Origin: Paraphysomonas bandaiensis
Lineage: Eukaryota > Protista > Chrysophyceae
DNA length: 51,205 nt
Direction: 5' to 3'
Assembly: GCA_965644295.1 (NCBI GenBank)
Contig: CBFFRP010000599.1
Location: 1-51,205, forward strand
Below are positions 2 to 24,260 of the stretch, piece by piece. A model generated the notes under the pieces. That model was given only the letters and a program-made list of their open reading frames with translations, had not been told where the DNA came from and made no database searches. Both the position numbers and the translations under genes were made by a program. Numbering within the stretch: position 1 is the stretch's first letter; each line of letters starts with the position of its first letter.

Positions 2-3000
2 AAACAGTATCAGTTCAAAGGGGATTTCCTAATTATTGACATGAAACATAATGATGTCATACTTGGATTGCCGGCACTTACTGGTACTTTATATCCCTTT
101 ATGTGTGAATTGATGAGGCATGCTTTTGAACAAACATCTTATGAGATAGAAAGCGATACCAAGAAGATTTCGAGTCATGATTTGTCTGGTTTAGAGCATG
201 GACAAATAGTGGAACCATGGTCTAAAGCGAGTACTCAAATTGCACCGGAGGAAGAGGATTCCGAATTGCCGGTTCAATTTAAAGAAGCTTTGGTATTCTT
301 AGGAAAGACTAGAGCGGAAGCTTTAAAAGACTATGAGCAGTTGTTGGAGACCCATGTTAGTAGTGAGATGAAGGAACAAACAAATGTGATGCATCTCTTA
401 CGAACTAAAGCGGTTAAAGTCTTTGTACCAGATGAGTGGTCTGGTGTAAAGGGCGTTGAACCTTTAAAAATTAAGTGGAAAGATACACTTCCGGATCGGA
501 TCAAACCCAAGGCGAGGCCTATTAATCCGAAGCTATGGGAAGCTTCAGAGAAAGAATTTCGTCGTCTGTGTGGGTATTTTTACCGGAAGAGTAGATCGCC
601 ATGGGCTTCTTGTCTTGTAGTAGCGCCCAAGGCTACACCTCCTTATATTCGATTTTGTGGGGATTACGTTAAGATCAATGATCATATGCATGTGGGAAAC
701 TACACTATTCCCAATGTCAAACATGAACTTGACAAGATCATTAATTTTCCATATTATTTGGATATAGATCTTACAAATGCGTTTCATCAAATACCTTTAG
801 ATGAGGAAACTTCCGAAAAATTGTCCATTCAAACGCCATGGGGACAGTTTGCACCTAATTTCATGCCAGAGGGTATAGCGCCTGCTACTGGTGTTCTGCA
901 AGAGGTTGTTCGGGAGATATTTGCCGATTTTTCAGACTGGGCTATCGTTATCTTTGATAATATGCTAATACTAGCCAAAGATCCCCAGGATGCTTATGAA
1001 AAGTTGGAACGAGTTATTGACAGATGTCTGGAGAGAAACATCAAATTGAAAATGGCTAAGAGCTGGCTTGGTTTTAAGAAAGTTAATTTTTTCGGATATG
1101 TATGCAAACACAAATCGTATGAAGTGTGTCCGGATAAAAAGGAAGCGTTGGCAAACATACCTATGCCAACATCGACTAAACAAGCTAGATCTCTGCTAGG
1201 CAAGGGAGTTTTCTTTTCCAGCTTCACGCCAAAGTATTCTGACTTAGTAGGTCATTTAACGGACCTCACTAAGAAATCTTTCAATTGGAATAAATCTACT
1301 TGGCGTCATGATTATGAAGCTGAGTACAAACGTTTCATAAAAGGTTTACAAGATGCTTGTGAGCTCTTCTACCCTGATTATGAGTTAGAGTGGATTTTAC
1401 GGACTGATGCAAGTGAGCTAGGTATAGGTTCTGTACTACTTCAACGGAAGATATTGCCGTCAGGAGAAGCTCAATTGCAACCTATTGCCTTTATCTCCAA
1501 AAAGTTTTCAGAGCAAGCAATGAAATGGGCTACTATAGAGCAGGAGGGCTATGGTATCTATTACTCGGTTAAACAGCTAGCGTATTACTTAGTTGGAAAG
1601 CAGTTTACAATAGAAACAGACCATAACAATTTGCTCTGGATGGAAGCGTCTGAGGTACCAAAAATTGTTAGATGGAGAATATTCTTGCAATCATTCAATT
1701 TTAAAATCCGACATATTTCGGGAGCACAGAATTGGTTAGCAGACTGGTTATCCAGGGAACACCAACTGGCTTATCTGTCGGGCATGTTCTTGGATGATTC
1801 TATGTGGGATGATGCCTATTTTCTGGGAGAGGACTGTCAGGATTCTGAGTATTTCTCATTCCTAGGAAATTTTATGGACCCGTCGGATCTCAGTGACCAA
1901 GAACAACCTTCCATGAATATATCTCGTGAGGAATGCTTGCGTGAGGTACACAACTCTCGCGTGGGTCATCTTGGAGGGAAAGCTACTTGGATTCGTCTCA
2001 ATAAACGTTTTCCAGGGCATGGAATACCATACCAGGTGGTAGCAGAATATATATCCAACTGTCCAACTTGCGTGAAAACCCGGTTAGCCATGAAGGAAGC
2101 ACTTATTCCCATAGTGCGCAACCTAAAACCACCGGGGGCTCGCAGTGCTATTGGAATTGATGCAGTGGAGATTACGCCACATGGCAAGGACGGTTACACT
2201 CATATCAATGTGATAGTGAACCTGCACACAAAGCTCGTTTTTCTGGAACCAGTAAAAGGAGTAACGGCTTTGAATTTAGCGAATACTGTGTGGAAATATT
2301 GGTCCTATTACGGTCACACGGACGTCGTGATTTCGGACCAGGGTCCGGATTTAACTTCGGATCTATTCCAACAGCTAACGGAGTACATGGGAATGCGCCA
2401 TACGTTCAGTATAGCCAACCGACATGCGAATGGCTCAGAACGTATCATAGGTGAGGTAGTACGTCACCTACGAGCTCTAGTATATGATGCTAGCGAGCGT
2501 CAAGAGCGCAAAGATGTTTTTGAAGATCCTAGCTGGATCGCCAGTGTCCAACACATTCTTAACTCTGAAGTGTCATCTGAGACGGGATTCTCACCATTTG
2601 AGTTGACTTTTGGATCGGAAGACAAGCGTTATTTTAACGTGGACACCGACTCTGTTTCCCAGGATGCGCATGCACGACTTAAACGTTTTAATGATAACCT
2701 TCGTGAGCTCAGGGCAGCTTCGCATGCTTATCAACAGCGTCTTGTGCAAGAGCGCGCTAGCCAAGGTATACCGGCCGACAAGCAGAACAGATATCAGCCG
2801 GGAGATCTTGTTTTGTTCGACAAGGGTGCTAAAGTCCATCCTAAGATGTCTCACCGCTATATGGGTCCTTTCAAAGTCATATCTCAATACAAGAATGACA
2901 TTGATTGCAGACATTTGGTGACAGGACAAGTTGTGAAAGTCGATGTGCGTGAGGTTAAACTTTTTGCGGGTGATCAAGACACAGCGTATAACATGGCTTG

Positions 3001-3502
3001 CAGAGACCATGAACAGCATGTGATTGACACGATTCTATACTACAGAGGTGATAGAGACACCAGAACCTCTCTAGTTTTCACTGTGAAATTTCAGGATGGT
3101 GATGTTCGCGATATTCCATTCAGTAAGGATATTTTTGACTCTATTCCATATGCCGATTTCTGTTCTAGGAAAAGATATTTGTATCATCTTATTTATCCGG
3201 TTAAAGAGGCAAAGGAATATATTGCAAAAATCCGTAAGCAGCCCATTACTAGTTTTCAACCAGGTGATGAGGCTTATGTTGACTTAAGAGTTTTCGGGGA
3301 CTTGTGGTATGAAAGCCTGGAGTTACCGGATTCACATTTAATTACTTATGTTGCACGTTTTGTCTTCACACATTGGTATCATAAAAGTTCCAAACGGATA
3401 CTCTCAACTAAAAATGTGATGACTAAACAAACTTTCCGACTTGATAATTACCATATCCATTGTTTCGCCCATAAAGAATTTGATTCTTCTACAATGGTGT
3501 GA
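2..3502 (+). CDS. pol: Gypsy Pol polyprotein of the outer element (protease end, RT, RNase H, integrase, chromodomain-like tail); 5'-partial, last 17 codons displaced by the nested insertion
   Basis: RT motifs IDLTNAFHQI, MPEG, IFDN; RNase H TDAS, EQE, TDH, ADWLSR; integrase HHCC (VHNSRVGH...CPTC), D,D,E and GPF motif. Frame is open back to base 2 (KQYQFKGDFLIIDM aligns with inner HTYQYTGEFLVIDM). Confidence 0.95.
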   Translation, partial: KQYQFKGDFLIIDMKHNDVILGLPALTGTLYPFMCELMRHAFEQTSYEIESDTKKISSHDLSGLEHGQIVEPWSKASTQIAPEEEDSELPVQFKEALVFLGKTRAEALKDYEQLLETHVSSEMKEQTNVMHLLRTKAVKVFVPDEWSGVKGVEPLKIKWKDTLPDRIKPKARPINPKLWEASEKEFRRLCGYFYRKSRSPWASCLVVAPKATPPYIRFCGDYVKINDHMHVGNYTIPNVKHELDKIINFPYYLDIDLTNAFHQIPLDEETSEKLSIQTPWGQFAPNFMPEGIAPATGVLQEVVREIFADFSDWAIVIFDNMLILAKDPQDAYEKLERVIDRCLERNIKLKMAKSWLGFKKVNFFGYVCKHKSYEVCPDKKEALANIPMPTSTKQARSLLGKGVFFSSFTPKYSDLVGHLTDLTKKSFNWNKSTWRHDYEAEYKRFIKGLQDACELFYPDYELEWILRTDASELGIGSVLLQRKILPSGEAQLQPIAFISKKFSEQAMKWATIEQEGYGIYYSVKQLAYYLVGKQFTIETDHNNLLWMEASEVPKIVRWRIFLQSFNFKIRHISGAQNWLADWLSREHQLAYLSGMFLDDSMWDDAYFLGEDCQDSEYFSFLGNFMDPSDLSDQEQPSMNISREECLREVHNSRVGHLGGKATWIRLNKRFPGHGIPYQVVAEYISNCPTCVKTRLAMKEALIPIVRNLKPPGARSAIGIDAVEITPHGKDGYTHINVIVNLHTKLVFLEPVKGVTALNLANTVWKYWSYYGHTDVVISDQGPDLTSDLFQQLTEYMGMRHTFSIANRHANGSERIIGEVVRHLRALVYDASERQERKDVFEDPSWIASVQHILNSEVSSETGFSPFELTFGSEDKRYFNVDTDSVSQDAHARLKRFNDNLRELRAASHAYQQRLVQERASQGIPADKQNRYQPGDLVLFDKGAKVHPKMSHRYMGPFKVISQYKNDIDCRHLVTGQVVKVDVREVKLFAGDQDTAYNMACRDHEQHVIDTILYYRGDRDTRTSLVFTVKFQDGDVRDIPFSKDIFDSIPYADFCSRKRYLYHLIYPVKEAKEYIAKIRKQPITSFQPGDEAYVDLRVFGDLWYESLELPDSHLITYVARFVFTHWYHKSSKRILSTKNVMTKQTFRLDNYHIHCFAHKEFDSSTMV

Positions 3503-4921
3503 CCACGTGGCATCTCGCGTGCCTTACTTACGTGGCTATAGTGTTTTCCTAAGGGGCTACAACAAGACACTAGATAGACTAACTACCAAGAAAACACTCA
3601 GAAATAACAGTCATTATTATTTATCACAGCATTGAAAACAACCATTCACTTACGGCGCAGTTTACTTTTTCGGTGATACCACTCACCGTAGTCAGCGAGC
3701 AGCTCTTCACCTGCCGGTATCGGTCTCAGAGTCTTGACCCAGACCACATCCAACCCAGACTCATCCATGCAGAATTCACAGTTGTAAGTCAGACCCGCAG
3801 CGAGATTCTCATCAAACAAGGTGTTTACGAACCTGCCGTGGTTATAAGGAGTCCTATGATATTTCCTCTCATGGCTGGGAACCGACATGAGATAACCTAC
3901 GTCATACTTCTCATGCTCGGCATCGATGTACACGGAGTCTTGCACACGAAGAATATAAGCACCCCAATTGGGGCACCGGTCATATATTTCTCCGCTATAG
4001 AGACACACTAGGAATCCAGACGCCAGGTCCACTAGAGCAAAGAGTCCTTTCTGCTGGGGACTCAAGCCATCTGGGTTGGCTATGTTGAGCCCCTTCCTAA
4101 CCTCGACGTATGGATTGTCGGTTCCACAACGAGCATAGAAATCCAGAACGGAGGCGCAAACATCAGGGGCTTCATCAAGGGATGCACTGTGCAAATAGGG
4201 GACTACTCTGCAGTGTTTACCACGCACGTCCGAGTGGACATCGGACTGCAAAGTCTCTGGCACGCCTCTTAGCCGCCTCTTCGCGAAAAGCTTGACGCCG
4301 GCGGTCTTCGTACTTCTTCTTGGAAGGCCGAACACGTGATTTGCATTTGCTTGGGTCTGTAATGGGTTCTTTCATTGCAAAATGCTGATTTAGGACAACT
4401 GTTGTTATGTTATGAAAGTGTACGTTAGCTAGTACTTTCCAAGTACCATTGTAGTTATGAGGAATGCAATACGATATACATTATACAGTGTTGTACAACC
4501 GTATTTGATAGAGTCGTTGACATGACTGTATATTGTTATACTGCTTGTATGACACAGCCTGCGTTGTGGTTGTGTGTTGCAACACAGTGTGACATGGATG
4601 ACGTTGTGTGTGTGCAGCTCTACGGTTGTCTTCATACTTTATGTTTCTGTTGTGACTCAGTTTTGTTTATGTTAACCATACTTGGGTACTAGCGACCTGA
4701 CATCACTAGCGGTGGTGTTTGCGTGCTGATTCTTCGCGGGAGTCAGTCACTCGAGTATAGTTGATTGAAACATAAGTTTACCTGTAATAATATCACTTCT
4801 TTGGTCTCATTGTCTTGATTCCTATACAGTGATAGTAGTTAGCGTTATCACGAGCCATAGTCTTGGTTATCAAACCAAACTGTGAGGTGACAGTTGAGTT
4901 GTCAAACGAGGCTGCGTCATA
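3498..4921 (+). repeat. 5' LTR of the inner element (1424 bp)
   Basis: Begins TGTGACCACGTGG, ends GCTGCGTCATA; direct repeat of 11395-12826. Confidence 0.95.
3646..4375 (-). pseudogene. SET-domain gene copy in the 5' LTR, frameshifted by an 8-bp deletion near 4235 relative to the 3' LTR copy
   Basis: SET-coding part translates identically to 11543-12280. ATG at 4375 corresponds to 12280, but CTCCTTGT is missing, so the ATG frame stops early (…RCPLGRAW*). Confidence 0.8.
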
Positions 4922-5427
4922 GTAATTAATTACTTAATTGCTCGTGCAAGATATTTTGCATTTTGTTATTGTATAACTGTAGTCAATAGACAAACATTTC
5001 ACACTGTCTTTTGCACTCATACTACACACCTGTAATTGAATTATATTGTTGATTTTTCACTTAGAATACTGAGCTAGACTTTTCCGTCTCCTCATATTCG
5101 ATACCTAATTATATAGGGCAAAGCCGATTAAAAGTCTCTGTTAGGACATAGTACGCAACGTAGCCTAGCTGCCTGAACCCCGTAAATCAACTGCGAGAAA
5201 GTCCTTGCTATTGTTTACAGTGGTGTTCTGTGCAGTGACAAGCTGTGAACAACATAACTGCTTCTCAAGCATTTGTTGTACTCAGTGGTGTGCTTTTGGA
5301 GTGAGAATATCCAGTATAGTTGGCAAGTCCGCCAGCTACTAGAATTCGAGCTACAAGTGCACAGGTGGTTGCTGAAAGCCCTGCAAGGACCAATAAAAGG
5401 CACAAACCCAGTCACTAAAACTTAATC

Positions 5428-7224
5428 ATGCATACACCTACTGAGGGTGAGCGTGGAAAGCAAGGGAGGAAGACCTTACCCAAGAAGTCTGACGTTCCTC
5501 AGGAAGAGAAAACTCAAACTGACCCAAGAGCTTCAAGCGCGGCCGCAGGAAAGAGTGAAGCCATGGCGGGTGCAAGCTCCAATCAGGAGATTTTAGACAC
5601 ACTCAGGACAATGTCAACCACTTTCACTGACGTTGTCTCAGCGGTTTCAACTTTGAATGATAGGATGCAGAGACTGGAGGAGAAGGTGCATGGATTGGAA
5701 GACACCGACCAAGTCCAATCACAACATTCAAGTAGCCCTGATGCGTCAGCAGGCGCAAAACACAAGCAACCTTCTAAACTGGAGAGAAGGAAGCCCAGGT
5801 ATTCCACAATGGGCGACCTGGCAAACTTTCGACCCAATCCAATGCAGAAAGAGGACGAGGAAGATTGTAAGTCGGAATCCAATGCAGAGAATGCAACTGT
5901 ACCTAAAAATCTGGCCGCGGAACAAATATTCAAGGGCAAGAAGCCAGGAAAACTTTTCAGAGATTTAAAGAAGAGCGCGGAGGTAGCAAATTCCAGAACG
6001 GTTACCATCACGAGGGAAGAGAAGCGTTGCCCGGTGCGCATAGAATCTCTAAAGTTAGGAGTGGTGGCCAAAGCAATTAATGACATTCTAGTATTCCAAG
6101 AGGAGGAGGAAACTGTAGTCCGGATACAGAAAGTTCTGTCCAGGAGTGTTAAGGACCATCTGCGAAATGTTTACAGCATTGCGTATTCAGATTTGGCTGC
6201 AATGGACTTATCAGATTTATTGAGAATCGTTGCTAGGGAGACGCGAGTGTTCAATTGTGTAGGCTTCTACAACGAGCTCAGAGATGCTTTGAAGCACATC
6301 AGAATTATGGAATGGAAACATGTAAACTCAGCTACTTTTGAAACGTTCTACAATCAGCAATTGAAGCTGATTCAAGCATTTAAGACCATATTGTCTATAA
6401 TGTTGGACTCGGACAACAAGAAGTGGTGCCCGAGGGTTGATGATAAAGAATTCGGTTTAATTCGTCTTTTCAAAAACCTGAATGATGGAAGTTATGTGAA
6501 GTTCGTCTTGGGATGCATGTCTTCCAACCGCTTTGATTCTATGAATGAATTTTTTGAAGAGTACTCAGCTATTCTGTTGGATCACTACCAAGTAACTATA
6601 GCTTACAAGCAAATACCTTTTGAGTCGAACATGCAGTTTCAACAAAAGCATGACGACTATATCAAAAGAAAGAGAGAGTTATTCAGCCAGCATAACAATA
6701 GCTCTAACTCTAGGAAGCCACAAACTAACCTACGTTTCTCTAGAGTGTCTCACATTGAAGCTTTTGATGATATAAACGAAGAGTGTGAGGATTATAGTTA
6801 CTGTGAGGATGAGTTACATATGGAGGAGGAAGCTTGGGATGCACCCAGTGAGACTTGGAAAACTGCCTTTCCAGGTTCACAACAGGACAATTCAGTGGAG
6901 TCTACGAAGGATACCACACCAGAAGAATTTAATCCCATGCTAGATGAAAGTCCTGATGTCGTCAAAGAACTGTCTGCGATGCATACCTCATATGAAACTC
7001 AGAACAAGAAGACTGAGAAGTACGGTTGTTTAAGGAAGATAATGTATGGGAAATGTAACAAACCGCAGTGCCCATACAATCATAATTCCAAATGTCTCCA
7101 AGATACTGCTGTCGAAATGAGAGAAAAGATCAACGCTTTCTTTCAAACGAAGGACGACACAGCACATCAGGAGAAACCTCCCGCTATCTTGAGGAGAGAA
7201 CGCTTCGGCGATTCTCGTCCTTGA
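5428..7224 (+). CDS. gag: Gag-like protein (598 aa) with coiled-coil N-terminal region and C-terminal CCCH zinc finger
   Basis: Long ORF between the 5' LTR and pol; C-x8-C-x4-C-x3-H (CLRKIMYGKCNKPQCPYNH). Assignment is mainly positional. Confidence 0.85.
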   Translation: MHTPTEGERGKQGRKTLPKKSDVPQEEKTQTDPRASSAAAGKSEAMAGASSNQEILDTLRTMSTTFTDVVSAVSTLNDRMQRLEEKVHGLEDTDQVQSQHSSSPDASAGAKHKQPSKLERRKPRYSTMGDLANFRPNPMQKEDEEDCKSESNAENATVPKNLAAEQIFKGKKPGKLFRDLKKSAEVANSRTVTITREEKRCPVRIESLKLGVVAKAINDILVFQEEEETVVRIQKVLSRSVKDHLRNVYSIAYSDLAAMDLSDLLRIVARETRVFNCVGFYNELRDALKHIRIMEWKHVNSATFETFYNQQLKLIQAFKTILSIMLDSDNKKWCPRVDDKEFGLIRLFKNLNDGSYVKFVLGCMSSNRFDSMNEFFEEYSAILLDHYQVTIAYKQIPFESNMQFQQKHDDYIKRKRELFSQHNNSSNSRKPQTNLRFSRVSHIEAFDDINEECEDYSYCEDELHMEEEAWDAPSETWKTAFPGSQQDNSVESTKDTTPEEFNPMLDESPDVVKELSAMHTSYETQNKKTEKYGCLRKIMYGKCNKPQCPYNHNSKCLQDTAVEMREKINAFFQTKDDTAHQEKPPAILRRERFGDSRP

Positions 7225-10200
7225 GGTAAGGAGGGATGTGAGGGTGTGGACCTGGATGAGTCTACAGTTAATGTTTGTAATGGAGAGACTGATTGTATGA
7301 AGCTCTCTAAATCTGAACATGAGACTGAAAATTCTTCCAGGGTTCGCACAGACAAGGATGAGGCAAAGCTGTACGCCTGCTATCCTTCCTCTAAAAGTTT
7401 TTCTTCAGCACATACCGTAGGTAGAGTAGTGATAGATAGAAAATTCAAAATGGAGGAATTAGTCAATGTATTGTGTGACACGGGGGCACTTGTGGCAAAC
7501 TATGTCGCAAAAGATTTAATTGAGAAACTTCGTGATAAACTACAGCCAAGCCGTTTCTACAAAGTGAAGCACAGAGTGGTATTAGCTGACAGCAGGACAG
7601 TCCAAGATTTGACTGAAGGAGTTCGACTGAATTTGGTATTGACTGATCCTAAGTCCCACACTTATCAATACACTGGAGAATTCTTGGTCATAGACATGAA
7701 AACCAATGATATTATTTTGGGATTGCCTGCGCTGACTGGAAAGTTATATCCTTTTATGTGTGCGGTTATGCGTGAGGCACATGAGACTCAAATCGAAGAT
7801 GTCTCTAATAGTGAAAATTCGAATGTGTTGTCATCTCTGGTAGGGGACACGGTTGATTCTGATGACCGTGTGCACCCGTGGAGGAAAGCAAGTGAGGATA
7901 CCGCCCCAGAGGATGATGAAACCGAGTTGCCGGTCCAATTTAAAGATGCGTTGACATTCTTAGGAAAGTCTCGAGAGGAAGCTCTCCAAGACTATCATGA
8001 GCAGATTAAAACTCACGTTAGTGAAGAGTTGAAGAGTGAGACTAACATCATGGAATTGTTAACAACTAAAGCGGAAAAAGTGTTCGTGCCAGACGAGTGG
8101 AGCGGTGTGAGAGGTGTGGAGCCTTTGTCTCTGAAATGGAAAAGTACTCTCCCAGAAAGGATGAAACCAAAGGCCCGGCCGATCAATCCTAAGCTGTGGG
8201 AAGCTTCGGAGAAGGAATTTCGACGATTGTGTGGCTATTTCTACAGAAAAAGTCGTTCTCCCTGGGCATCTTGCCTAGTGGTAGCTCCAAAAGCCACTCC
8301 TCCATACATACGTTTTTGTGGTGACTACGTGCAAATTAACAAGCATATGGAGGTAGGGAACTACACTATTCCCAATGTCAAGCATGAGCTTGACAAGATC
8401 ATCAACTTTCCACTGTACATGGACATAGACTTGACAAATGCTTTCCATCAGATTCCGTTGGCAGATGAAACATCAGAGAGGTTGTCTATTCAGACACCAT
8501 GGGGGCAATATGCTCCAAACTTCATGCCAGAAGGCATTGCTCCTGCCACAGGTGTTCTACAAGAGACAGTGCGAGACATATTCAGTGACTTTTCTGAATG
8601 GGCAATTGTTATTTTTGATAATATGCTCATACTTGCACATGATGCTCAGGACGCCTATGAAAAATTTGAAAAGATTATTGACCGATGTATCGAAAGAAAT
8701 GTAAAACTTAAAATGCCAAAGAGCTGGTTGGGATTTAGAAAAGTAGATTTCTTTGGATATGTTTGTCGACATAAGTCCTATGAAGTTAACCCCGAGAAAA
8801 AAGAAGCACTAGGAAAGATTCCGATGCCTACCACGACCAAGCAGGCTAGATCTCTTTTAGGCAAGGGTGTATTTTTCTCCAGCTTTACTCCAAAATACTC
8901 CGATTTGGTGGCTCATTTGACTGACATGACCAAAAAGACTTTTAATTGGGACAAAAGTACTTGGAGGCATGATTATGAAGCTGAATTCCGTCGCTTCATC
9001 AAGGGTCTTCAAGATTCATGTGAGCTGTTTTATCCAGACTATGAGCTGGAATGGACTTTACGAACCGATGCTAGTGAGTTGGGAGTAGGCGCTGTTTTGT
9101 TACAGAAAAAGATATTTCCGAGTGGGGAAACACAATTACAGCCTATAGCTTTCATTTCGAAAAAATTTTCCACTCAGGCTCAGAAATGGGCGACCATTGA
9201 GCAAGAGGCTTATGGTATCTTCTATAGTGTCAAGCAATTAGCTTACTATTTGATTGGAAAGCAGTTCACCATTGAAACGGATCACAATAATCTGCTATGG
9301 ATGGAGGCATCAGAGGTACCGAAGATAACCAGGTGGAGGATTTTCCTACAATCTTTCAACTTTAATATTCGCCACATTTCTGGTGCTAAGAACTGGCTAG
9401 CGGATTGGTTGTCTCGGGAACATCAAGTAGCTGCCTTGTCAGGCATATTTTTAGATGAAGACTTGGATGATGTCTATTTTCTCGGCGATGATTGCACTGA
9501 GGACGAGTTTTTCAATTTCTTGGGAAATTTTATGGAACCTGAGGATCGAGAAATAGCACCTCCATCCGAGACACAAGTTACTCCTGAAGAAGCGTTGCTC
9601 CAAGTACATAACGCCCGAGTAGGACACATGGGAGGTAGAGCTACATGGATACGTTTGAATAAGGAGTTCCCGGGTCATAACATTCCTTATAAGGTTGTTG
9701 AGGATTATATTTCCAAGTGTCCAAATTGTGTGAAAACGAGATTAGCTATGAGAGAGGCTCTCATTCCTATCGTTCGAAATCTCAAGCCGCCAAATGCTAG
9801 GAGCGCTATTGGCATTGATGCAGTAGAGATTACACCGCATGGCGCGGATGGATATACTCATATCAATGTGGTGGTTAACCTTTTCACCAAGTTAGTATAC
9901 CTTGAACCGGTAAAGGGAGTCACGGCCCTTAATCTTGCCAATACGGTTTGGAAATACTGGACTCACTATGGACACACAGATCTCATTATTTCTGATCAAG
10001 GACCGGACTTGACTTCCGATCTATTCAAACAGTTGACCGAATATATGGGTGTCCGGCACACTTTCAGCATCGCTAACCGTCACGCCAACGGTTGTGAGCG
10101 CATTATTGGGGAGGTTGTGCGACACTTGCGTGCTTTGGTCTATGATAACAGTGAGCGTGAAGAACGCAGAGATGCTTTTGAGGATCCCAGCTGGATAGCC

Positions 10201-11211
10201 AATGTCCAGTATATCTTGAATTCGGAGGTTTCATCAGAAACAGGCTATTCTCCTTTCGAGTTGACATTTGGCTCCAATGACCTTGAATATCTAACCATGG
10301 ACATTAAAGAGTTACCAGAAAAGGCTCATGCTCGCCTTTCTGCTCTCAATGATCAATTAGCGAAACTTCGTGAAGCTTCCAAAGCTTATCAACAAAAACT
10401 GGCCAGCGAGAGAGCCAGTGAGGGTGTTCATCCTGACAGACAGAACAGATATCAACCTGGCGACTTTGTATTGTTCGACAAGGGCGCTAAGGTGCATCCA
10501 AAAATGTCTCACAGGTACATGGGACCATTTACAGTCAAACATCAATACAAAAACGATGTTGACTGCCAGCATCTGGCGACTGGACAAATGGTACGCGTTT
10601 CTGTCAGTGATGTAAAATTATTTCCAGGAGATCGTGACACAGCATACAAAATGGCCTTGCGTGATCATGAACAACACGTCATAGACAAAATCCTTTATTA
10701 TAAAGGTGATCGCGACGTGAGATCTACTATGACTTTTACTGTGCGTTTCCAAGATGGTGATGTTAGAGAAGTGCCTTATAGCAAGGATCTTTTTGACTCG
10801 ATACCCTACGCTGAGTTTTGCTCCAGCAAAAGATATCTATACCATCTTATTTATTCTACTGAAGGTGCTAAGAAATACATATCAGACATTCGTAAACAAC
10901 CGATCACTCAGTTTCAACCTGGTGATCTCGCATATGTCGATTTGCGAATTTATGGCGATGTTTGGTATGATGAGTTGGATCTTCCAGATTCTCATCTACT
11001 CACTTATGTAGCTCCTATCCAGTTCACACACTGGTACCACAAGAGCTCTAAGCGAGTATTATCGGTAAAAGATCTTCTCACTCTCCGCACCTACCGTTAT
11101 GACAACTACCTGGTACATTGTTTCGTTCATTCAGAGGTGAATACCAGCAATATGGTACTAGTAGATGAGGATTTTGCCCGACAATTTCCACAAGTCCGTG
11201 AGTCTTATTAG
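7225..11211 (+). CDS. pol: Gypsy Pol polyprotein of the inner element (PR-RT-RNase H-IN-chromodomain-like), intact
   Basis: Protease LCDTGA…IILG; RT IDLTNAFHQI/IFDN; RNase H; integrase HHCC, DDE, GPF; domain order is Gypsy. Frame is open directly after the gag TGA; first ATG at 7297. Confidence 0.96.
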   Translation, partial: GKEGCEGVDLDESTVNVCNGETDCMKLSKSEHETENSSRVRTDKDEAKLYACYPSSKSFSSAHTVGRVVIDRKFKMEELVNVLCDTGALVANYVAKDLIEKLRDKLQPSRFYKVKHRVVLADSRTVQDLTEGVRLNLVLTDPKSHTYQYTGEFLVIDMKTNDIILGLPALTGKLYPFMCAVMREAHETQIEDVSNSENSNVLSSLVGDTVDSDDRVHPWRKASEDTAPEDDETELPVQFKDALTFLGKSREEALQDYHEQIKTHVSEELKSETNIMELLTTKAEKVFVPDEWSGVRGVEPLSLKWKSTLPERMKPKARPINPKLWEASEKEFRRLCGYFYRKSRSPWASCLVVAPKATPPYIRFCGDYVQINKHMEVGNYTIPNVKHELDKIINFPLYMDIDLTNAFHQIPLADETSERLSIQTPWGQYAPNFMPEGIAPATGVLQETVRDIFSDFSEWAIVIFDNMLILAHDAQDAYEKFEKIIDRCIERNVKLKMPKSWLGFRKVDFFGYVCRHKSYEVNPEKKEALGKIPMPTTTKQARSLLGKGVFFSSFTPKYSDLVAHLTDMTKKTFNWDKSTWRHDYEAEFRRFIKGLQDSCELFYPDYELEWTLRTDASELGVGAVLLQKKIFPSGETQLQPIAFISKKFSTQAQKWATIEQEAYGIFYSVKQLAYYLIGKQFTIETDHNNLLWMEASEVPKITRWRIFLQSFNFNIRHISGAKNWLADWLSREHQVAALSGIFLDEDLDDVYFLGDDCTEDEFFNFLGNFMEPEDREIAPPSETQVTPEEALLQVHNARVGHMGGRATWIRLNKEFPGHNIPYKVVEDYISKCPNCVKTRLAMREALIPIVRNLKPPNARSAIGIDAVEITPHGADGYTHINVVVNLFTKLVYLEPVKGVTALNLANTVWKYWTHYGHTDLIISDQGPDLTSDLFKQLTEYMGVRHTFSIANRHANGCERIIGEVVRHLRALVYDNSEREERRDAFEDPSWIANVQYILNSEVSSETGYSPFELTFGSNDLEYLTMDIKELPEKAHARLSALNDQLAKLREASKAYQQKLASERASEGVHPDRQNRYQPGDFVLFDKGAKVHPKMSHRYMGPFTVKHQYKNDVDCQHLATGQMVRVSVSDVKLFPGDRDTAYKMALRDHEQHVIDKILYYKGDRDVRSTMTFTVRFQDGDVREVPYSKDLFDSIPYAEFCSSKRYLYHLIYSTEGAKKYISDIRKQPITQFQPGDLAYVDLRIYGDVWYDELDLPDSHLLTYVAPIQFTHWYHKSSKRVLSVKDLLTLRTYRYDNYLVHCFVHSEVNTSNMVLVDEDFARQFPQVRESY

Positions 11212-11376
11212 ACTCACACACTCTGCTTTGACTACTTCCTTCAATATAATTTATATATCCCATGAGTTAATCCGGATTGTCTTCGTTCTGATGGCTACGT
11301 CAAACCTAGTTCTGTTGGCATCTGTAGGCGCCGGATCGGGATTTACTCAGTTTTATTTCCAAAAAAAAATTCAACC

Positions 11377-11394
11377 AAAGAGGGGAGGGGGCAA
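11377..11394 (+). promoter_or_regulatory. Polypurine tract of the inner element
   Basis: AAAGAGGGGAGGGGGCAA immediately before the 3' LTR TG. Confidence 0.9.
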
Positions 11395-12826
11395 TGTGAC
11401 CACGTGGCATCTCGCGTGCCTTACTTACGTGGCTATAGTGTTTTCCTAAGGGGCTACAACAAGACACTAGATAGACTAACTACCAAGAAAACACTCAGAA
11501 ATAACAGTCATTATTATTTATCACAGCATTGAAAACAACCATTCACTTACGGCGCAGTTTACTTTTTCGGTGATACCACTCACCGTAGTCAGCGAGCAGC
11601 TCTTCACCTGCCGGTATCGGTCTCAGAGTCTTGACCCAGACCACATCCAACCCAGACTCATCCATGCAGAATTCACAGTTGTAAGTCAGACCCGCAGCGA
11701 GATTCTCATCAAACAAGGTGTTTACGAACCTGCCGTGGTTATAAGGAGTCCTATGATATTTCCTCTCATGGCTGGGAACCGACATGAGATAACCTACGTC
11801 ATACTTCTCATGCTCGGCATCGATGTACACGGAGTCTTGCACACGAAGAATATAAGCACCCCAATTGGGGCACCGGTCATATATTTCTCCGCTATAGAGA
11901 CACACTAGGAATCCAGACGCCAGGTCCACTAGAGCAAAGAGTCCTTTCTGCTGGGGACTCAAGCCATCTGGGTTGGCTATGTTGAGCCCCTTCCTAACCT
12001 CGACGTATGGATTGTCGGTTCCACAACGAGCATAGAAATCCAGAACGGAGGCGCAAACATCAGGGGCTTCATCAAGGGATGCACTGTGCAAATAGGGGAC
12101 TACTCTGCAGTGTTTACCACGCACGTCCGAGTCTCCTTGTGGACATCGGACTGCAAAGTCTCTGGCCCGCCTCTTAGCTGCCTCTTCGCGAAAGGCCTGA
12201 CGCCGGCGGTCTTCGTACTTCTTCTTGGAAGGCCGAACACGTGATTTGCATTTGCTTGGGTCTGTAATGGGTTCTTTCATTGCAAAATGCTGATTTAGGA
12301 CAACTGTTGTTTTGTTATGAAAGTGTACGTTAGTTAGTATTTTTCAAGTACAAGTGTAGTTATGAGGAATGCAACATGATATACATTATACAGTGTTGTA
12401 CAACCGTATTTGATAGAGTCGTTGACATGACTGTATATTGTTATACTGCTTGTATGACACAGCCTGCGTTGTGGTTGTGTGTTGCAACACAGTGTGACAT
12501 GGATGACGTTGTGTGTGTGCAGCTCTACGGTTGTCTTCATACTTTATGTTTCTGTTGTGACTCAGTTTTGTTTATGTTAACCATACTTGGGTACTAGCGA
12601 CCTGACATCACTAGCGGTGGTGTTTGCGTGCTGATTCTTCGCGGGAGTCAGTCACTCGAGTATAGTTGATTGAAACATAAGTTTACCTGTAATAATATCA
12701 CTTCTTTGGTCTCATTTTCTTGATTCCCATACAGTGATAGTAGTTAGCGTTATCACGAGCCATAGTCTTGGTTATCAAACCAAACTGTGAGGTGACAGTT
12801 GAGTTGTCAAACGAGGCTGCATCATA
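11395..12826 (+). repeat. 3' LTR of the inner element (1432 bp)
   Basis: TGTGACCACGTGG…GCTGCATCATA; 8 bp longer than the 5' LTR. Confidence 0.95.
11543..12280 (-). CDS. SET-domain protein (putative protein-lysine methyltransferase), 245 aa, encoded antisense inside the LTR
   Basis: SET signatures in order: KGLFA…G..VCLYSGE, YIDAE, GRFVN…NCEF, VKTLRPIPAGEELLADYGEWY; basic NLS-like N- and C-terminal stretches. Confidence 0.88.
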   Translation of the reverse strand: MKEPITDPSKCKSRVRPSKKKYEDRRRQAFREEAAKRRARDFAVRCPQGDSDVRGKHCRVVPYLHSASLDEAPDVCASVLDFYARCGTDNPYVEVRKGLNIANPDGLSPQQKGLFALVDLASGFLVCLYSGEIYDRCPNWGAYILRVQDSVYIDAEHEKYDVGYLMSVPSHERKYHRTPYNHGRFVNTLFDENLAAGLTYNCEFCMDESGLDVVWVKTLRPIPAGEELLADYGEWYHRKSKLRRK

Positions 12827-13042
12827 ATGGTCTTGGTAGACGAGGAATTTGCCAGCAAATTTCCACAAGTTAATCAGTCGGTATAAAGTGTTCCTACTCT
12901 ACAATTTACGATGTGAAATTTTTCAGTATTCTCCGAATTACATCTATAATATGATAATAATACTCCATGGTGGTTCGTTTTGATGGCTATTTCAAACCTA
13001 GTCCCATTGACATGTGTGCGACCATGGATTTCTCACAAAAAC

Positions 13043-13057: not shown

Positions 13058-14076
13058 TGTGACCACGTGGCATTTCCTATGCCCTATCTACGTGTCTATA
13101 GTACTAGAATTACATGCATTGCCCACTCAGGACCCTATAATATTAGTTTAGGACCCTATATCAAGAACATTATATCATCAGGACCCCATACCATGTCTAG
13201 GATGCATATTCTATGTTACACTTATTAAGATGGGGTAACGAGCTATGATGTACCTACACACGGAATCAACGTTCAGGTGTAATGTCCACTTTATCTGCTG
13301 ATGATGATGTACACTATGTTCTGCTGATGGTGACTTCACGCAATGTGAAACCTGCCACAAATTTATAATAAAGTTATGTGGGTCAGTATTCCAGTGTAGC
13401 AGTTGCAGTGTATACTTCCATAGGAATACGTACTGGCATTACCCATACTACCCTCTATAGGGGGGCAAGTACATATCACACCAAGGGAGAATGGATATTA
13501 TATACTCGAGGTGCACGAGTGTTCATACCAGACTCAGTGGGGAATCAATTGTGATATGCAATACCTGGTATGCAGGGTTGTATTTACGTATAACCTGGAT
13601 ATTAGGGATTTTGGGTTTTTGAATGCTAAAATACACCAAAGTGGCGGTATACTGTTTTTGTAAGGGAATTTAGGTAGAAAGTAAAACGTAGGATGTAGTG
13701 TACTATTAGTATGCGGTTATACGTTGCTCCTAGGTTGCTGTGTGTATTCAGTTTATAGAATAAACACGTTTCTGTGGGTGGTTGTGAGGTTGCAGGGTGT
13801 TGTGATGTTGTTGAGGAGTAGGAGTGGGTGTAACATGTATGCTATGGTGTTATGCACTTGTTTAGGCTTAACCGAAGTGCTTGGTGCCAACGATCTTGTT
13901 GCACTGGCGGTGTTCCTTGCGTGGTGATACTTGGCGGGTATCATTTACTGAGCATTAGGTTTTTCCTAGAGCAGTCAAAACATAATTAATTATACATTGT
14001 TTTCACACTTGCGTGTTTGTGTGCTATACCTGTACTGCGAGCCGTGATTCTGGTTATCAAACCGGGTTGCGTCATA
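13058..14076 (+). repeat. 3' LTR of the outer element (1019 bp), without a SET ORF
   Basis: Starts TGTGACCACGTGGCAT and ends TGGTTATCAAACC…TGCGTCATA like the inner LTRs; interior not visibly homologous. Confidence 0.88.
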
Positions 14077-15007
14077 CATCTGTTATGTATGGTTTTAATT
14101 TATTATATAAGCTTTTAAAGTCATTGAAGTTATGAACTATTTCATCTAAAAAACATAATGCTTTACCACACAACGAACCGTTAAATTCTCCCATGAAGAC
14201 ATTCTCATTAGACAATGTGATTGTGTTATATAAACCCATTACTAATGATATGAATCTAACTATTGAACTTTTACCAACACCCATTGGCCCTTTCAAATAA
14301 ATCATTGTTTTCATCTTATGTCCTTTTATAAGCTTTCTTATCCAGCTTTTGTCATACTTATAATTAACTTCATTCCCTGAATTCCACACTTCTTTAATGT
14401 GATTCCATATGAACTTCATTCCTTTTTTACCTTGCTCAATTTTCTTCATATCTTTTTTTGAATTCTTATCGTATTTATATCCTGAAAACAAATTTAAGAA
14501 GTCGTCATCACCTTTAGAAAATATCCTGGGTTTTGTGTTATCACATACTAAAGTATGTTTATCAGAATATTTATTAAACCATGCTTTAATATGATCGGGA
14601 AAGTACTTTCCAAATGTGTTTATAAAATTAGTTTGTGAATACTCATATGGTAGTATATGACCATCTGGGTTTTTTGTTAATACGTAAAACATACTATCGT
14701 AACCATGGAATATATTTTGTTTAATGTAAGTTGTTGACTTAGGGAAAACTTTTTCATAATCTTCTGTTTCTAGTTTCTTAATTATATCTGTTCTTATTGT
14801 GTTTTCATTTATTCTTATCTTTGTATTTAACGTTCCTACAGTTTCAGAGACTTTCTTATTTATATATGTTTCATAATTATCAACTTCTTCTTTATATAAT
14901 CTTTTAAGTTCTTTGTCTTTGTAAAGTTGTAAATATTTACCTATAAATTGCTCCTTCTCTTCTTTTGTAATCTTTTCACCATTGATCTCAGATTTTGTTT
15001 TTGTCAT
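14072..15007 (-). pseudogene. D5-like/SF3 helicase (primase-helicase type) of viral or Polinton-like origin, 3'-truncated by the Gypsy LTR
   Basis: Walker A GPMGVGKS, FNG motif, Walker B LCFLDE, then KLKPYIT; the stop codon lies inside the LTR terminus; intronless, very AT- and Lys-rich. Confidence 0.85.
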
Positions 15008-16801: not shown

Positions 16802-16915
16802 TGCTTACTACTACAATTCAACTCTGACAGTTTAGACTAGTTAACAATAGATCTGCGAACAAGTAAGATGTACGCACAGAGTACGTATGCGTTGCACGGT
16901 ATCTATGTACACTCC

Positions 16916-17091
16916 TATGTATGTATGTATGTATGTATGTATGTATGTATGTATGTATGTATGTATGTATGTATGTATGTATGTATGTATGTATGTATGT
17001 ATGTATGTATGTATGTATGTATGTATGTATGTATGTATGTATGTATGTATGTATGTATGTATGTATGTATGTATGTATGTATGTATGTATG
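16916..17091 (+). repeat. (TATG)n microsatellite, about 44 units
   Basis: Perfect tetranucleotide run. Confidence 0.98.
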
Positions 17092-17223
17092 TTGGGGTGT
17101 GTGTTCGTGTTGGGTGAAGTGATGTGTGTGGATTGGAAGTAAGTTGTGTTGTGTATGTATCTGTTGATGCATACGTGTATAGTAGTTTTGATCATATCTG
17201 ACGAGCACTAAAAACTGTGGAAT

Positions 17224-18660: not shown

Positions 18661-19992
18661 TGCTATGCTTTCTGATATAGTATATCCACATTAACATATA
18701 TCTAACAAGCAAGTATTTTTTAGCTTTTTCGTGTTGACATATTGCACTACCTAGCTACCTAGTAGCATTACATTATTACATTGCATATCGAATTCACCAA
18801 CTATAGCTGGTACATAGTGCATAGAGTTCTCGTCGAATACGAACATTTTGGTTGGTGTTAGTATGTTAGCATTGACTTTGTTTTGACGTGCACGTTACTT
18901 ACTATTTACTATGTGACCAACTTCATGGACATGATTGTCGCTAATGGAAAGAACTGCAAAGTTAAAAGAAACTAGATTTAGCGTCCTATATTCGTCATAT
19001 AGGATAGAATAAAGCAGGACAAAGGAACAATAGCACAATATATAGTAGTATTATAAATAAATTAAAGGGGGAGAGAGGATAGAGTAGCGTACTTGGTACT
19101 TGCCAAGTTGACTGTAAAATGACTAAAACCTGAAACACATTGCCCTAGCTTACTTTGATCACATTTTCATTTGTGGCCCCGTAATACGCCATAATCAGCG
19201 CGTATACAATTTTCACAAATACTAGAGCTAAGCTGACATACAGTTCTTTCGGTACTTTGAAATTTCAAAATAATTTGACGTGTGATACACCTGAAAGCTT
19301 GATATGGATAACGACACTACTGGTCCATCTTCTTGAATAATGAGAACAAGCACGGTCCATACCGATTGTGACACTTTACTGGTGGTATACTTCGGAATGA
19401 AGTCGGCACACTACTGAAGATGAAGTGTGGTCGTTGTAGCATTGGATGGTGTTTACCGAGAAGTTAAAACTAGTATAGTGGAGGACTAAAATAGATAGTG
19501 TATATACTAGACGCGCTGCAAAACAAGGAGAATCAAAACTAGGGAATACATGCTAGAGTGGAAGTCAGAAAAGGACAGGATGTATTCTCACAAAACAATG
19601 TTGCTGCCTTTTCTTCAAGTCGACTTGTCAAGCACCAAGACTAGTCAACTGAGACGAAACAAATTTCACTCGTACATCCGCCTAATGTGACGTCTATAAC
19701 AGAACATTCACTTGTACCATCACCAGACAACCAATAGTAATGATAGCACACTCCACTCAATCCTTATAGTAGTATCCAATGAATCTATTAGAAGATCTAC
19801 TTACGTCGCTTCTATTAGCGCATGAGCATATCTAACACTACATCACTAATCCAGTACATCAGACAGGCTCATACTTTTGATATGATTGTCTAGGAACAAC
19901 CATACTATAAACCGCTATATCATCTCTAGCTACACCGTATACGGTATACATACATACATACACACATACTACATACATACATACACACATAC

Positions 19993-20217
19993 TACATACA
20001 TACATACATACATACATACATACATACATACATACATACATACATACATACATACATACATACATACATACATACATACATACATACATACATACATACA
20101 TACATACATACATACATACATACATACATACATACATACATACATACATACATACATACATACATACATACATACATACATACATACATACATACATACA
20201 TACATACATACATACAT
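19993..20217 (+). repeat. (TACA)n microsatellite, about 56 units, with a degenerate lead-in from ~19946
   Basis: Perfect run; reverse complement of the 16916 array motif. Confidence 0.98.
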
Positions 20218-20335
20218 GTACATACGGAGATCCTTGAGGGGATATTGATGTGGGTTTGGATAGGAATCGAATTCTCTCATCGCCCTCTTTTATATTCTAG
20301 CATAGCCCAGCTTCCAGGTTAAGTGCGACTTACAG

Positions 20336-22449: not shown

Positions 22450-23757
22450 ATGAATCAGTGTTCTTATATGTCGCATATATCTGATCTTAACGATGATGTT
22501 GTTCGTGTCATCATCTCCATGATCCCACACACGGCTGTCCTTCCAGTGATCATGACTTGTAGGAGATTTCACGATATAGTATACACTGATAGGAGGAGAG
22601 TACAGTCACATGCATCTCACTACTGTATGACCAACTCAATGGTCTCATGGGCTCTGGCTATGGGCTGCCCAGAGATATGGATGATGAATACATGTGCACT
22701 ATACGGCAGACTACAGCAGATGATACACATGAAACGCGCCATCATGAGACATGATTCGCATTCACAGGACCCTCCATGTCCATGGGATAAAGGGACTTGC
22801 AATGCTGCTGCTGATGGTGGACACTTGGATGTTCTGAAGTGGCTTCGTTCACAGGACCCTCCATGTCCATGGAATGAATGTACTTGCAATGCTGCTGCTA
22901 GTGGTGGACACTTGGACGTTCTGAAGTGGCTTCGTTCACAGGACCCTCCATGTCCATGGAGTATATACACTTGCTCTACTGCTGGTGGTGATGGACAGCT
23001 AGATGTTCTGAAGTGGCTTCGTTCACAGGACCCTCCATGTCCATGGGATGAATGTACTTGCAATACTGCTGCTAGTGGTGGACACTTGGACGTTCTGAAG
23101 TGGCTTCGTTCACAGGACCCTCCATGTCCATGGGATCGCTACATTTACAACATAGCAGCTCGATATGGACAGTTGGATGTTTTGAAGTGGCTTCGTTCAC
23201 AGGACCCTTCATGTCCATGGAGTGAATGGATTTGCACTTCTGCTGCTGATGGTGGACACTTGGATGTACTGAAGTGGCTTCGTTCACAGGACCCTCCATG
23301 TCCATGGGATGAAAGGACTTGCAATGCTGCTGCTAGTGGTGGGTATGATGCTGCTAGTGGTGGACACTTGGATGTTCTGAAGTGGCTTCGTTCACAGAAC
23401 CCTCCATGTCCATGGGATGAAGATACTTGCAAAGCTGCTGCTAGTGGTGGACACTTGGATGATCTGAAGTGGCTTCGATCACAGGACCCTCCATGTCCAT
23501 GGGATGAATATACTTGCAAAGCTGCTGCTGATGGTGGACACTTGGATGTTCTGAAGTGGCTTCGTTCACAAGACCCTCCATGTCCATGGGATAAAGGTAC
23601 TTGCAATGCTGCTGCTAGTGGTGGACACTTGGACGTTCTGAAGTGGCTTCGTTCACAGGACCCTCCATATCCATGTGAAAGGTTGCGTCACAATAGGTAT
23701 GTTTCAAGAACACTATTAGAGCACAGTACTGCTGGCTCAATTTATTTATTAATATAA
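22450..23757 (+). CDS. F-box-like N-terminus plus ~10 ankyrin-like 29-aa repeats (GHLDVLKWLRSQDPPCPW type), intronless
   Basis: SDLNDDVVRVIISMI…TCRRFHDI resembles an F-box; 87-bp tandem units. This repeat type is known from giant viruses and algae. Confidence 0.85.
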   Translation: MNQCSYMSHISDLNDDVVRVIISMIPHTAVLPVIMTCRRFHDIVYTDRRRVQSHASHYCMTNSMVSWALAMGCPEIWMMNTCALYGRLQQMIHMKRAIMRHDSHSQDPPCPWDKGTCNAAADGGHLDVLKWLRSQDPPCPWNECTCNAAASGGHLDVLKWLRSQDPPCPWSIYTCSTAGGDGQLDVLKWLRSQDPPCPWDECTCNTAASGGHLDVLKWLRSQDPPCPWDRYIYNIAARYGQLDVLKWLRSQDPSCPWSEWICTSAADGGHLDVLKWLRSQDPPCPWDERTCNAAASGGYDAASGGHLDVLKWLRSQNPPCPWDEDTCKAAASGGHLDDLKWLRSQDPPCPWDEYTCKAAADGGHLDVLKWLRSQDPPCPWDKGTCNAAASGGHLDVLKWLRSQDPPYPCERLRHNRYVSRTLLEHSTAGSIYLLI

Positions 23758-24260
23758 TAATACACAGCAGATACATACCATAGTTATCTACTGTATTAAT
23801 ATAATATTTATGATTTGTTATACTTGCGTCCTATAAACTCTGAACTCGTTGTGTACTCGACTTTGTTTCAGGAAGCAGTTCTGTACGTTACACTCGATAT
23901 GACGAGTCACTTGACCCATCGGCCTGCAACTGGATGGTGGGACATAATTGTGTAGAAGAATGCAGGATCTGTGGGAGAGGTTATTGAAGCAGTCGAAGGC
24001 TTGATATGTAGATACCTTAGCTACATGCTGGTATTGTACGTTGTACACATTGTATTCTCTATTCTCTTTGTATCCTTTCTTTGAATGTCAATAATATAAG
24101 CTTCATACATGCTGATGATGCTAAAAGAATATTATCTTTTGACCTCACTTCATTTCCTGGTGCATGGGGTATTAGAATATGGACTGTATCCTAGTATATT
24201 CAATGTGGTACTTGAAGACAATGTACGAGAATACAGTGAAGTATAGTGATGTGTAGATGC

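Follow-up and report, generated by a model that had tools for sequence, protein, structure and literature searches.

A SET-domain gene on the antisense strand of the long terminal repeats of a Ty3/gypsy-type retrotransposon in Paraphysomonas bandaiensis

Transposable elements (TEs) are known to be associated with chromatin enzymes, and some retroelements carry accessory genes at unusual positions. A survey of TE-chromatin fusions lists SET among the catalytic domains fused with TE domains (Grau-Bove et al., 10.1101/2021.11.30.470311), and retrotransposons have been described that encode DNA methyltransferases (DNMTs; de Mendoza et al. 2018, PMC5890265) or, in a Copia element, a methyl-CpG-binding domain (MBD; PMC6673714). 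Most of the sag gene of mouse mammary tumor virus (MMTV) lies in the unique 3' region (U3) of the long terminal repeat (LTR) (PMC4667437), and the plant Ty3/gypsy elements Grande, RIRE2 and Retand carry antisense open reading frames (aORFs) between pol and the 3' LTR, some of whose products are nuclear (PMC7264820). Here we describe a SET-domain gene that lies on the antisense strand inside the LTR of a Ty3/gypsy-type retrotransposon, element B, in Paraphysomonas bandaiensis (GCA_965644295.1, contig CBFFRP010000599.1, positions 1-51,205 of the forward strand; this whole stretch of 51,205 nt, with 43% G+C content (GC), is called the window below). No published description of a SET gene inside an LTR was found in full-text literature searches, which agrees with the first-pass annotation of the window; its companion statement, that LTRs are normally non-coding, needs the qualification that MMTV sag is a precedent for coding within an LTR. 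The LTR SET gene is a variant within two known themes, the accessory genes of retrotransposons and the capture of chromatin enzymes.

TE-SET fusions and SETMAR share with element B the association of a transposable element with a SET domain. The published fusions, however, are single gene models, whereas SET in the window stands apart as a gene of the LTR, on the strand opposite to pol and, judging from a sister copy, transcribed by itself, and a screen for fusions would have missed it. Element B resembles the DNMT and MBD retrotransposons in that a host epigenetic component has been acquired and kept, but the DNMT and MBD domains are in sense orientation within the coding region of the element and concern DNA methylation, whereas lysine methylation is predicted for the SET protein. 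With MMTV sag it shares a protein-coding gene in U3 that is hence present in both LTRs. In contrast, sag is read in sense from several promoters in a mouse retrovirus and encodes a superantigen rather than an enzyme, whereas the SET gene is antisense and has a candidate promoter and a candidate poly(A) site within the LTR. Like the plant aORFs, the SET gene is an antisense accessory ORF on the 3' side of pol that is conserved within lineages; unlike it, the plant aORFs are located outside the LTR and have no recognisable enzymatic domain.

Element B occupies 9.3 kb of the window (3498-12826). Self-comparison of the window by blastn shows one long direct repeat, 98.4% identical with a single indel, which corresponds to the 5' LTR (3498-4921, + strand, 1424 bp, termini TGTGA...TCATA) and the 3' LTR (11395-12826, + strand, 1432 bp). 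The LTR start TGTGACCACGTGGCA is common to many family copies. The target-site duplication ATGG can be read directly at 3494-3497 and, immediately 3' of the 3' LTR, at 12827-12830, and joining the flanks of element B restores the pol frame of its host element, with STMV up to the junction and LVDEEF past it. A polypurine tract, aaagaggggagggggcaa (11377-11394, + strand), abuts the 3' LTR, and sister elements as well as environmental ones have an equivalent tract in the corresponding position. Together with pol domains in the order protease, reverse transcriptase (RT), RNase H and integrase, these features identify element B as a Ty3/gypsy retrotransposon, as the first-pass annotation had proposed. 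The SET gene (11543-12280, - strand; 245 aa, 738 nt, ATG start, no intron) takes up 52% of the 3' LTR (738 of 1432 bases), and the annotated half of the 3' LTR is thus accurate. It is also evident that the ORF is intact: it is open from the ATG, matches Pfam SET (PF00856) at 30.9 bits against a cut-off of 22.4 (E = 3.8×10−7), and carries the motifs GLFA, YSGE, RFVNT and EELLADYG in this order. The SET ORF has 51% GC (GC at third codon positions, GC3, 0.53), compared with a GC3 of 0.41 in pol (7246-11211) and 39.5% GC in the LTR core, and its higher GC may reflect a different origin or a different codon selection.

The SET gene was also said to be duplicated in the 5' LTR. This holds for the DNA only, because the 5' copy (3646-4375, - strand) is a pseudogene. 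Its first 47 codons are protein-identical to the 3' copy, the frame is then lost through an 8-bp deletion between 4233 and 4234, and the SET core (Pfam E = 4×10−7) is left without an ATG. The differences between the two LTRs are unevenly distributed: the first 736 bp are free of them, and the 15 substitutions and the 8-bp indel all fall in the last 696 bp, which suggests a recombinant origin of the LTRs or gene conversion. The 8-bp indel aside, all differences are located to the right of 12130, and the four substitutions within the ORF are all synonymous. The uneven and synonymous pattern suggests variation that had been selected before insertion, for example through two-template recombination, rather than later decay. 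If the differences were filtered in this way, LTR identity would be a poor clock for element B.

To place the SET protein, 1.84 billion cluster representatives were searched, giving 110 related clusters, all of small proteins (~70-430 aa), 49 of which were used as the family alignment. With this alignment the AlphaFold2 model of the SET protein has a predicted local distance difference test score (pLDDT) of 92 and a predicted template modelling score of 0.85. The best 50 PDB matches of the model in Foldseek are all SET lysine methyltransferases (probability 1.0, E ~10−7 to 10−6, target template modelling score at most 0.68), and the top matches include MLL1, MLL3, MLL4, SET7/9, SETD8, NSD1, NSD2 and LegAS4. 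The assignment to the SET fold is based on the model and these matches and leaves the pseudoknot aside; the Pfam search and structure prediction that the first-pass annotation had put forward as checks both speak for SET. Enzymes for H3K4, H3K9, H3K36, H4K20 and non-histone substrates are all among the structural neighbours, which therefore point to no particular mark or substrate. A phmmer search of PDB sequences with the single SET protein found no match, whereas the family profile matched KMT2C, EHMT2/G9a, LegAS4, SETD8, EZH2, PRDM9 and PRDM1. The best of these are KMT2C, EHMT2 and LegAS4, a mixture that permits no subfamily assignment. In the profile alignment, NYGRYiNT of the family corresponds to NISRFINH of G9a, and GEELLvDYG to GEELGFDYG.

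Pfam SET is matched by 46 of the 49 family members and PRDM2_PR by 22. Asn187 and Tyr232 are each kept in 47 members, Tyr129 and Tyr143 each in 46, and an aromatic residue at position +4 past the DYG motif is found in 45. The C-terminal half of the protein resembles PR domains (PRDM9, PRDM1, PRDM2): its RY(V/I)N motif lacks the His, and the residue two positions ahead of the Tyr in GEELL-x-x-Y is small and hydrophobic. Unlike PRDM proteins, the family has no zinc-finger arrays, and the window protein falls below the PR model: it has no PRDM2_PR match at E ≤ 0.01 and no zinc fingers in its 245 aa, and so does not classify as a PRDM protein. The vSET protein of chlorella virus PBCV-1 is another comparison, a stand-alone SET domain of ~120 aa with a canonical NHS motif and without pre- or post-SET zinc clusters. 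The window protein is likewise a small stand-alone SET of a genetic parasite, but it has 245 aa, a structured N-terminus of 110 residues (a long basic helix, a hairpin and two helices in the model) and N-T at the motif, and vSET is not among the top 50 Foldseek matches. A conserved zinc site in the N-terminal part was considered and rejected, since its four Cys vary across the family.

Searched in six frames, the 62.6-Mb assembly yielded 66 matching pieces from ~43 SET loci, ranging from 100% down to 37% identity, many of them paired 5.5-7.9 kb apart. Diverged SETs (31-70% identity) keep this place and orientation both in further element lineages of the genome and on the environmental contigs L055, L057 and L078. 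At all fetched loci, SET is antisense, immediately 3' of pol, and antisense 5' of gag (contigs checked for this layout: C70, C564, C589, C378, C645, C242, C496, C218, C656 and C491), and the 15-base LTR terminus is invariant at most of them. The same layout as in element B is seen in L055 (pol 58% and SET 34% identical) and in L057 (pol 47%, gag 28% and SET 31% identical), and L078 shows gag, pol and then an antisense SET of 289 aa. Reading on from the SET stop, one reaches the LTR edge and the polypurine-tract complement within 75-150 nt in element B, C70, C242, L055 and L078, so that the gene lies inside the LTR in the other four as well. Moreover, the exact 245-aa protein is encoded on at least 16 contigs from Tara Oceans and other marine metagenomes. 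Head-to-tail tandems sharing one LTR are present in L041 (G000:C70:5001-15000; unit 6143 bp, 99.9% identity), and another tandem of this kind, with a period of 6527 bp, is present in the Tara contig L077. Two metagenome LTRs with non-element flanks, L068 and L071, were rejected as solo LTRs because they show no matching target duplication; they may be assembly joins.

Comparison of lineages indicates that the LTR SET gene is under purifying selection. Between element B and the C338 lineage, the proportions of nonsynonymous (pN) and synonymous (pS) differences are 0.19 and 0.73, giving a ratio of nonsynonymous to synonymous substitution rates (dN/dS) of ~0.08; in more distant lineages pS is saturated (0.74-0.84) and pN is 0.33-0.54. 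Indels between lineages are in frame, and outside the ORF the lineages are similar in DNA only over a few short blocks of non-coding sequence. SET and pol identity rise together (r = 0.88, 21 pairs that are not independent of one another), and in one lineage pair SET is 58%, Gag 48% and Pol 84% identical, so that SET is no less conserved than Gag. An ORF that is open by chance can be excluded, because at least 11 lineages with saturated synonymous sites keep open frames of 229-329 aa. Of the two signs of a dispensable frame that the first-pass annotation had named, a dN/dS near 1 is thus far from what is seen against C338, whereas a majority of broken copies is indeed present (see below).

Transcription is seen in a sister copy. 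The homologue P0002 is a complete ORF on the MMETSP transcriptome contig L032 (915 nt), bases 1-909 of which match G000:C338:268801-269709 at 99% identity; the match is colinear, and the sister SET transcript therefore has no intron. The last six A's of L032 are not templated (the genome continues TTTATGC) and thus represent a real poly(A) tail. About 20 nt ahead of this tail lies ATAAATAATAATGA, which occurs in the window only in the two LTRs; at 11508-11521 (- strand), 22 nt past the SET stop, it is a candidate poly(A) signal. C338 also has a TATA-like box ~30 nt upstream of the 5' end of L032, and by analogy the TATA-like sequence at 12378-12391 (- strand) of the window, ~100 nt upstream of the SET ATG, may be the antisense promoter. 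From the positions of these two motifs, the SET transcription unit would fit inside the LTR. The C338 copies are LTR remnants in a duplicated segment that has neither gag nor pol; of the LTR they keep the 5' terminus and the SET unit with no more than 144 bp upstream. This fits the earlier suggestion that the gene can be left behind in an LTR. Exact-pattern scans of metagenome contigs, which may not cover records near this genome, found no element B-type transcripts.

SET is not a constant part of these elements. When the C-terminus of pol was used as query, at least 135 copies were found, which fall into lineages of 100, 99, 88, 85, 70, 66, 46, 44 and 35% identity, and a Tara element of a 43% lineage has no SET. 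Several families show an identical truncation or internal deletion of SET in both LTRs. Comparison of LTRs separates a conserved core (12305-12826, + strand; presumably the sense promoter, R and U5, and the promoter side of SET), which is kept at 87-99% in C400 and C315, from a variable left part. In C400 the stretch 11465-12316 has been replaced and the core kept, and in C315, with a pol identical to that of element B, a SET of another type, itself carrying a deletion, has taken over part of this stretch. The interior of the LTR thus behaves like a module that can be exchanged, and SET is an accessory function, either acting in trans or of use under some conditions. A match to the SET family hidden Markov model (HMM) downstream of the pol of the 35% lineage (C377) was rejected as an LTR SET. 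It belongs to L064 (G000:C377:4720-6120, - strand), a frame of the long interspersed nuclear element (LINE) type in which a SET domain (Pfam E = 1.7×10−9, N-D for N-H), only remotely similar to the LTR SET, is fused directly to the start of an apurinic/apyrimidinic-type endonuclease. SET is thus carried by retroelements of this genome in a second, distinct form, which is a fusion of the published kind.

We consider it rather probable that the SET gene is an antisense accessory gene of U3 that encodes an active lysine methyltransferase and benefits the element in trans. On this account, a recently inserted Ty3/gypsy-type element carries on the opposite strand of U3 a 738-nt intronless ORF for a 245-aa PR/SET-like protein, which stops ~100 nt short of the LTR edge, with its promoter side presumably in the conserved LTR core and a probable poly(A) signal of its own, and the position in U3 means that reverse transcription copies the gene into both LTRs. 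In the predicted protein, a basic and helical N-terminal part precedes a complete SET core, in which both the cofactor Asn and the catalytic Tyr are present. As judged from its motifs and model, the protein is most likely an active S-adenosylmethionine-dependent lysine methyltransferase. Most likely it works in the nucleus, as its basic N- and C-terminal tails suggest, on histone tails or on proteins of the element or the host, to the advantage of the element. The roles put forward in the first-pass annotation, namely anti-silencing, self-regulation and marking of target sites, are hypothetical. The protein would act in trans, and many mobile copies do without it.

Several results weigh against this account. 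Only ~12 of the 43 genomic loci have an intact SET, about 70% of the copies being broken, and some elements with a truncated SET have 100% identical LTRs, so that elements without a working SET transpose and SET is not needed in cis. With the family HMM, no SET was found within 2.2 kb downstream of pol in the sampled copies of the 99% (C400), 88% (C69, C39), 70% (C132, the type of element A described below), 66% (C109, C12), 46% and 44% lineages. Within lineages dN/dS is 0.43-0.47, a value that is expected if much of the difference is post-insertion decay. The one transcript observed belongs to a sister lineage, in which its source is a truncated LTR remnant. Furthermore, the protein departs from the canonical NH(S/C)xxPN motif, with Thr in 28, Ser in 19 and Cys in 2 of the 49 family members in place of His, and lacks the post-SET cysteine/zinc cluster, both of which the first-pass annotation had already noted for the window protein.

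The last two features could mean that the protein is a catalytically dead SET-fold module, a regulator or decoy that binds S-adenosylmethionine, lysine tails or a partner. The similarity of 22 members to PR domains points the same way, many PR-domain proteins having little or no measured activity, and in the C338 lineage the protein ends right past DYG, so that the aromatic C-flank is gone. However, N-T/S in 47 of the 49 members marks the substitution as a family trait rather than decay, and alignment of the family identifies it as a conserved signature of a distinct PR/SET-like clade and not a lesion. PRDM9 lacks the His of the NH motif and is nevertheless an active enzyme, and it is among the proteins that the family profile matches. 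Moreover, the cofactor Asn and the three channel or catalytic Tyr are near-invariant at a family identity of ~25-30%, as selection on catalysis predicts. We therefore regard a dead module as possible but unlikely.

It is an improbable alternative that SET was captured from a host or a virus and is no more than a passenger of the LTR, with any selection acting for the benefit of the host, for example in the stranded C338 copies. That SET is optional and often lost would agree with this, as would the source of the single transcript, a truncated LTR remnant without gag and pol that is duplicated with both ORFs intact, and the difference in GC3 between SET and pol; the closest clusters in the Atlas contain SET proteins of haptophytes and giant viruses, which is a lead only. 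However, position, orientation and distance from the LTR edge are kept at pol identities of 47-58% and in other organisms, and the ORF stays open while synonymous sites are saturated. SET divergence tracks pol divergence, and the three informative contexts of distant homologues (3 of 3) are all retroelements. It might also be the antisense RNA that matters, with coding incidental: through its complementarity to the U3 part at the 3' end of the sense genomic RNA, the SET mRNA could pair with that RNA and act as a regulator or a trigger of RNA interference, and antisense transcripts regulate other retroelements and have been discussed for plant elements (PMC7264820). A dN/dS of ~0.1 with saturated dS, in-frame indels only and the retention of catalytic residues indicate selection on the protein instead and make this explanation very improbable.

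Retrotransposons can read chromatin through chromodomain integrases. One speculation is that the LTR SET and the chromo-like/Tudor-like tail of the integrase of element B form a writer-reader pair, in which SET would lay a lysine-methyl mark on chromatin at or near existing copies and the integrase tail would read the mark and steer insertions to element-rich "safe" chromatin. If true, this would explain the nesting of elements in one another, and we give it little chance. The last 301 residues of pol were modelled (pLDDT 87): residues 43-110 of the model are the expected SH3/Tudor-like barrel of integrase, residues 121-177 match chromo and chromoshadow folds with a modest Z of 5.7-5.8, and the whole tail is only loosely like tandem Tudor and MBT readers. 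A canonical chromodomain was rejected, since pol has no Chromo Pfam match even at E up to 10 and none of 39 homologues has a precomputed hit. The aromatic-cage positions, which we take from a tentative alignment to HP1, are His, Phe and Asp/Gly and thus not canonical. The fold is chromo-like, and the tail is a putative reader.

If the protein is active, an LTR that contains an independently transcribed lysine-methyltransferase gene would give a mobile element one more means of disturbing the chromatin of its host or turning it to its own use, and a writer-reader pair would amount to a retrotransposon building its own landing pad. The SET gene is doubled at every insertion and can persist in LTR remnants, and LTRs emerge from this case as gene cassettes that can be exchanged. 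The system is testable, since the protein is small, intronless and models well, and intact and naturally SET-less sister elements in one genome provide natural controls. The SET family is also present in ocean metagenomes.

The remaining parts of element B are those of a Ty3/gypsy-type element. The gag ORF (5428-7224, + strand; 598 aa) is homologous to the gag of sister elements and has a C-terminal CCCH-type zinc knuckle, with a weak zf-CCCH match. The pol ORF (7225-11211, + strand) comprises a protease with a DTG motif read in the ORF, RT with IFDN, RNase H, integrase, an SH3-like and a chromo-like domain and a further barrel, and matches RVT_1, RT_RNaseH, Integrase_H2C2 and rve in Pfam. The gag and pol ORFs are in the same frame, with a single stop codon between them (7222-7224), which suggests stop-codon read-through rather than frameshifting. 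Downstream of 4921 (GTAATTAATTAC...), inspection by eye, with no tRNA comparison behind it, found no TGG-type primer binding site. The YxDD motif expected in the RT of a Ty3/gypsy element is absent from pol, which has IFDN instead (8599-8625). Both window elements have IFDN, as do 29 of 39 clade homologues (P0114-P0152), the pattern matching nothing in the other 10. Elements with IFDN nevertheless look recently mobile, with LTRs of up to 100% identity.

Element B is inserted in the last pol codons of a sister element, element A, whose pol (41-3497, + strand, continuing at 12827-12889) shares ~72% DNA identity with that of element B. The frame resumes exactly past the right ATGG and ends with the stop at 12887-12889. 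The 3' LTR of element A (13058-14076, + strand) has the same 15-base terminus as element B and is 97% identical to the LTR after the 70%-lineage pol at C132; it gives no SET match and contains no SET gene. Adjoining this LTR is the end of a 311-aa ORF (14072-15007, - strand) that has a P-loop, matches DUF5906 and is of the D5-like viral primase-helicase type, with only 27% GC. Because this ORF abuts the LTR of element A, the SET element is nested in element A, which in turn is nested in a virus-like gene fragment. Further along the window, long (TATGTATG)n-type microsatellites at 16855-17140 and 19937-20272 flank a gene cluster in inverted orientation, an array of 87-bp tandem repeats is found at 22715-23818 within a 435-aa ORF, and a block of ~14 kb (26668-40416) consists of 1.3-2-kb repeats at 82-95% identity.

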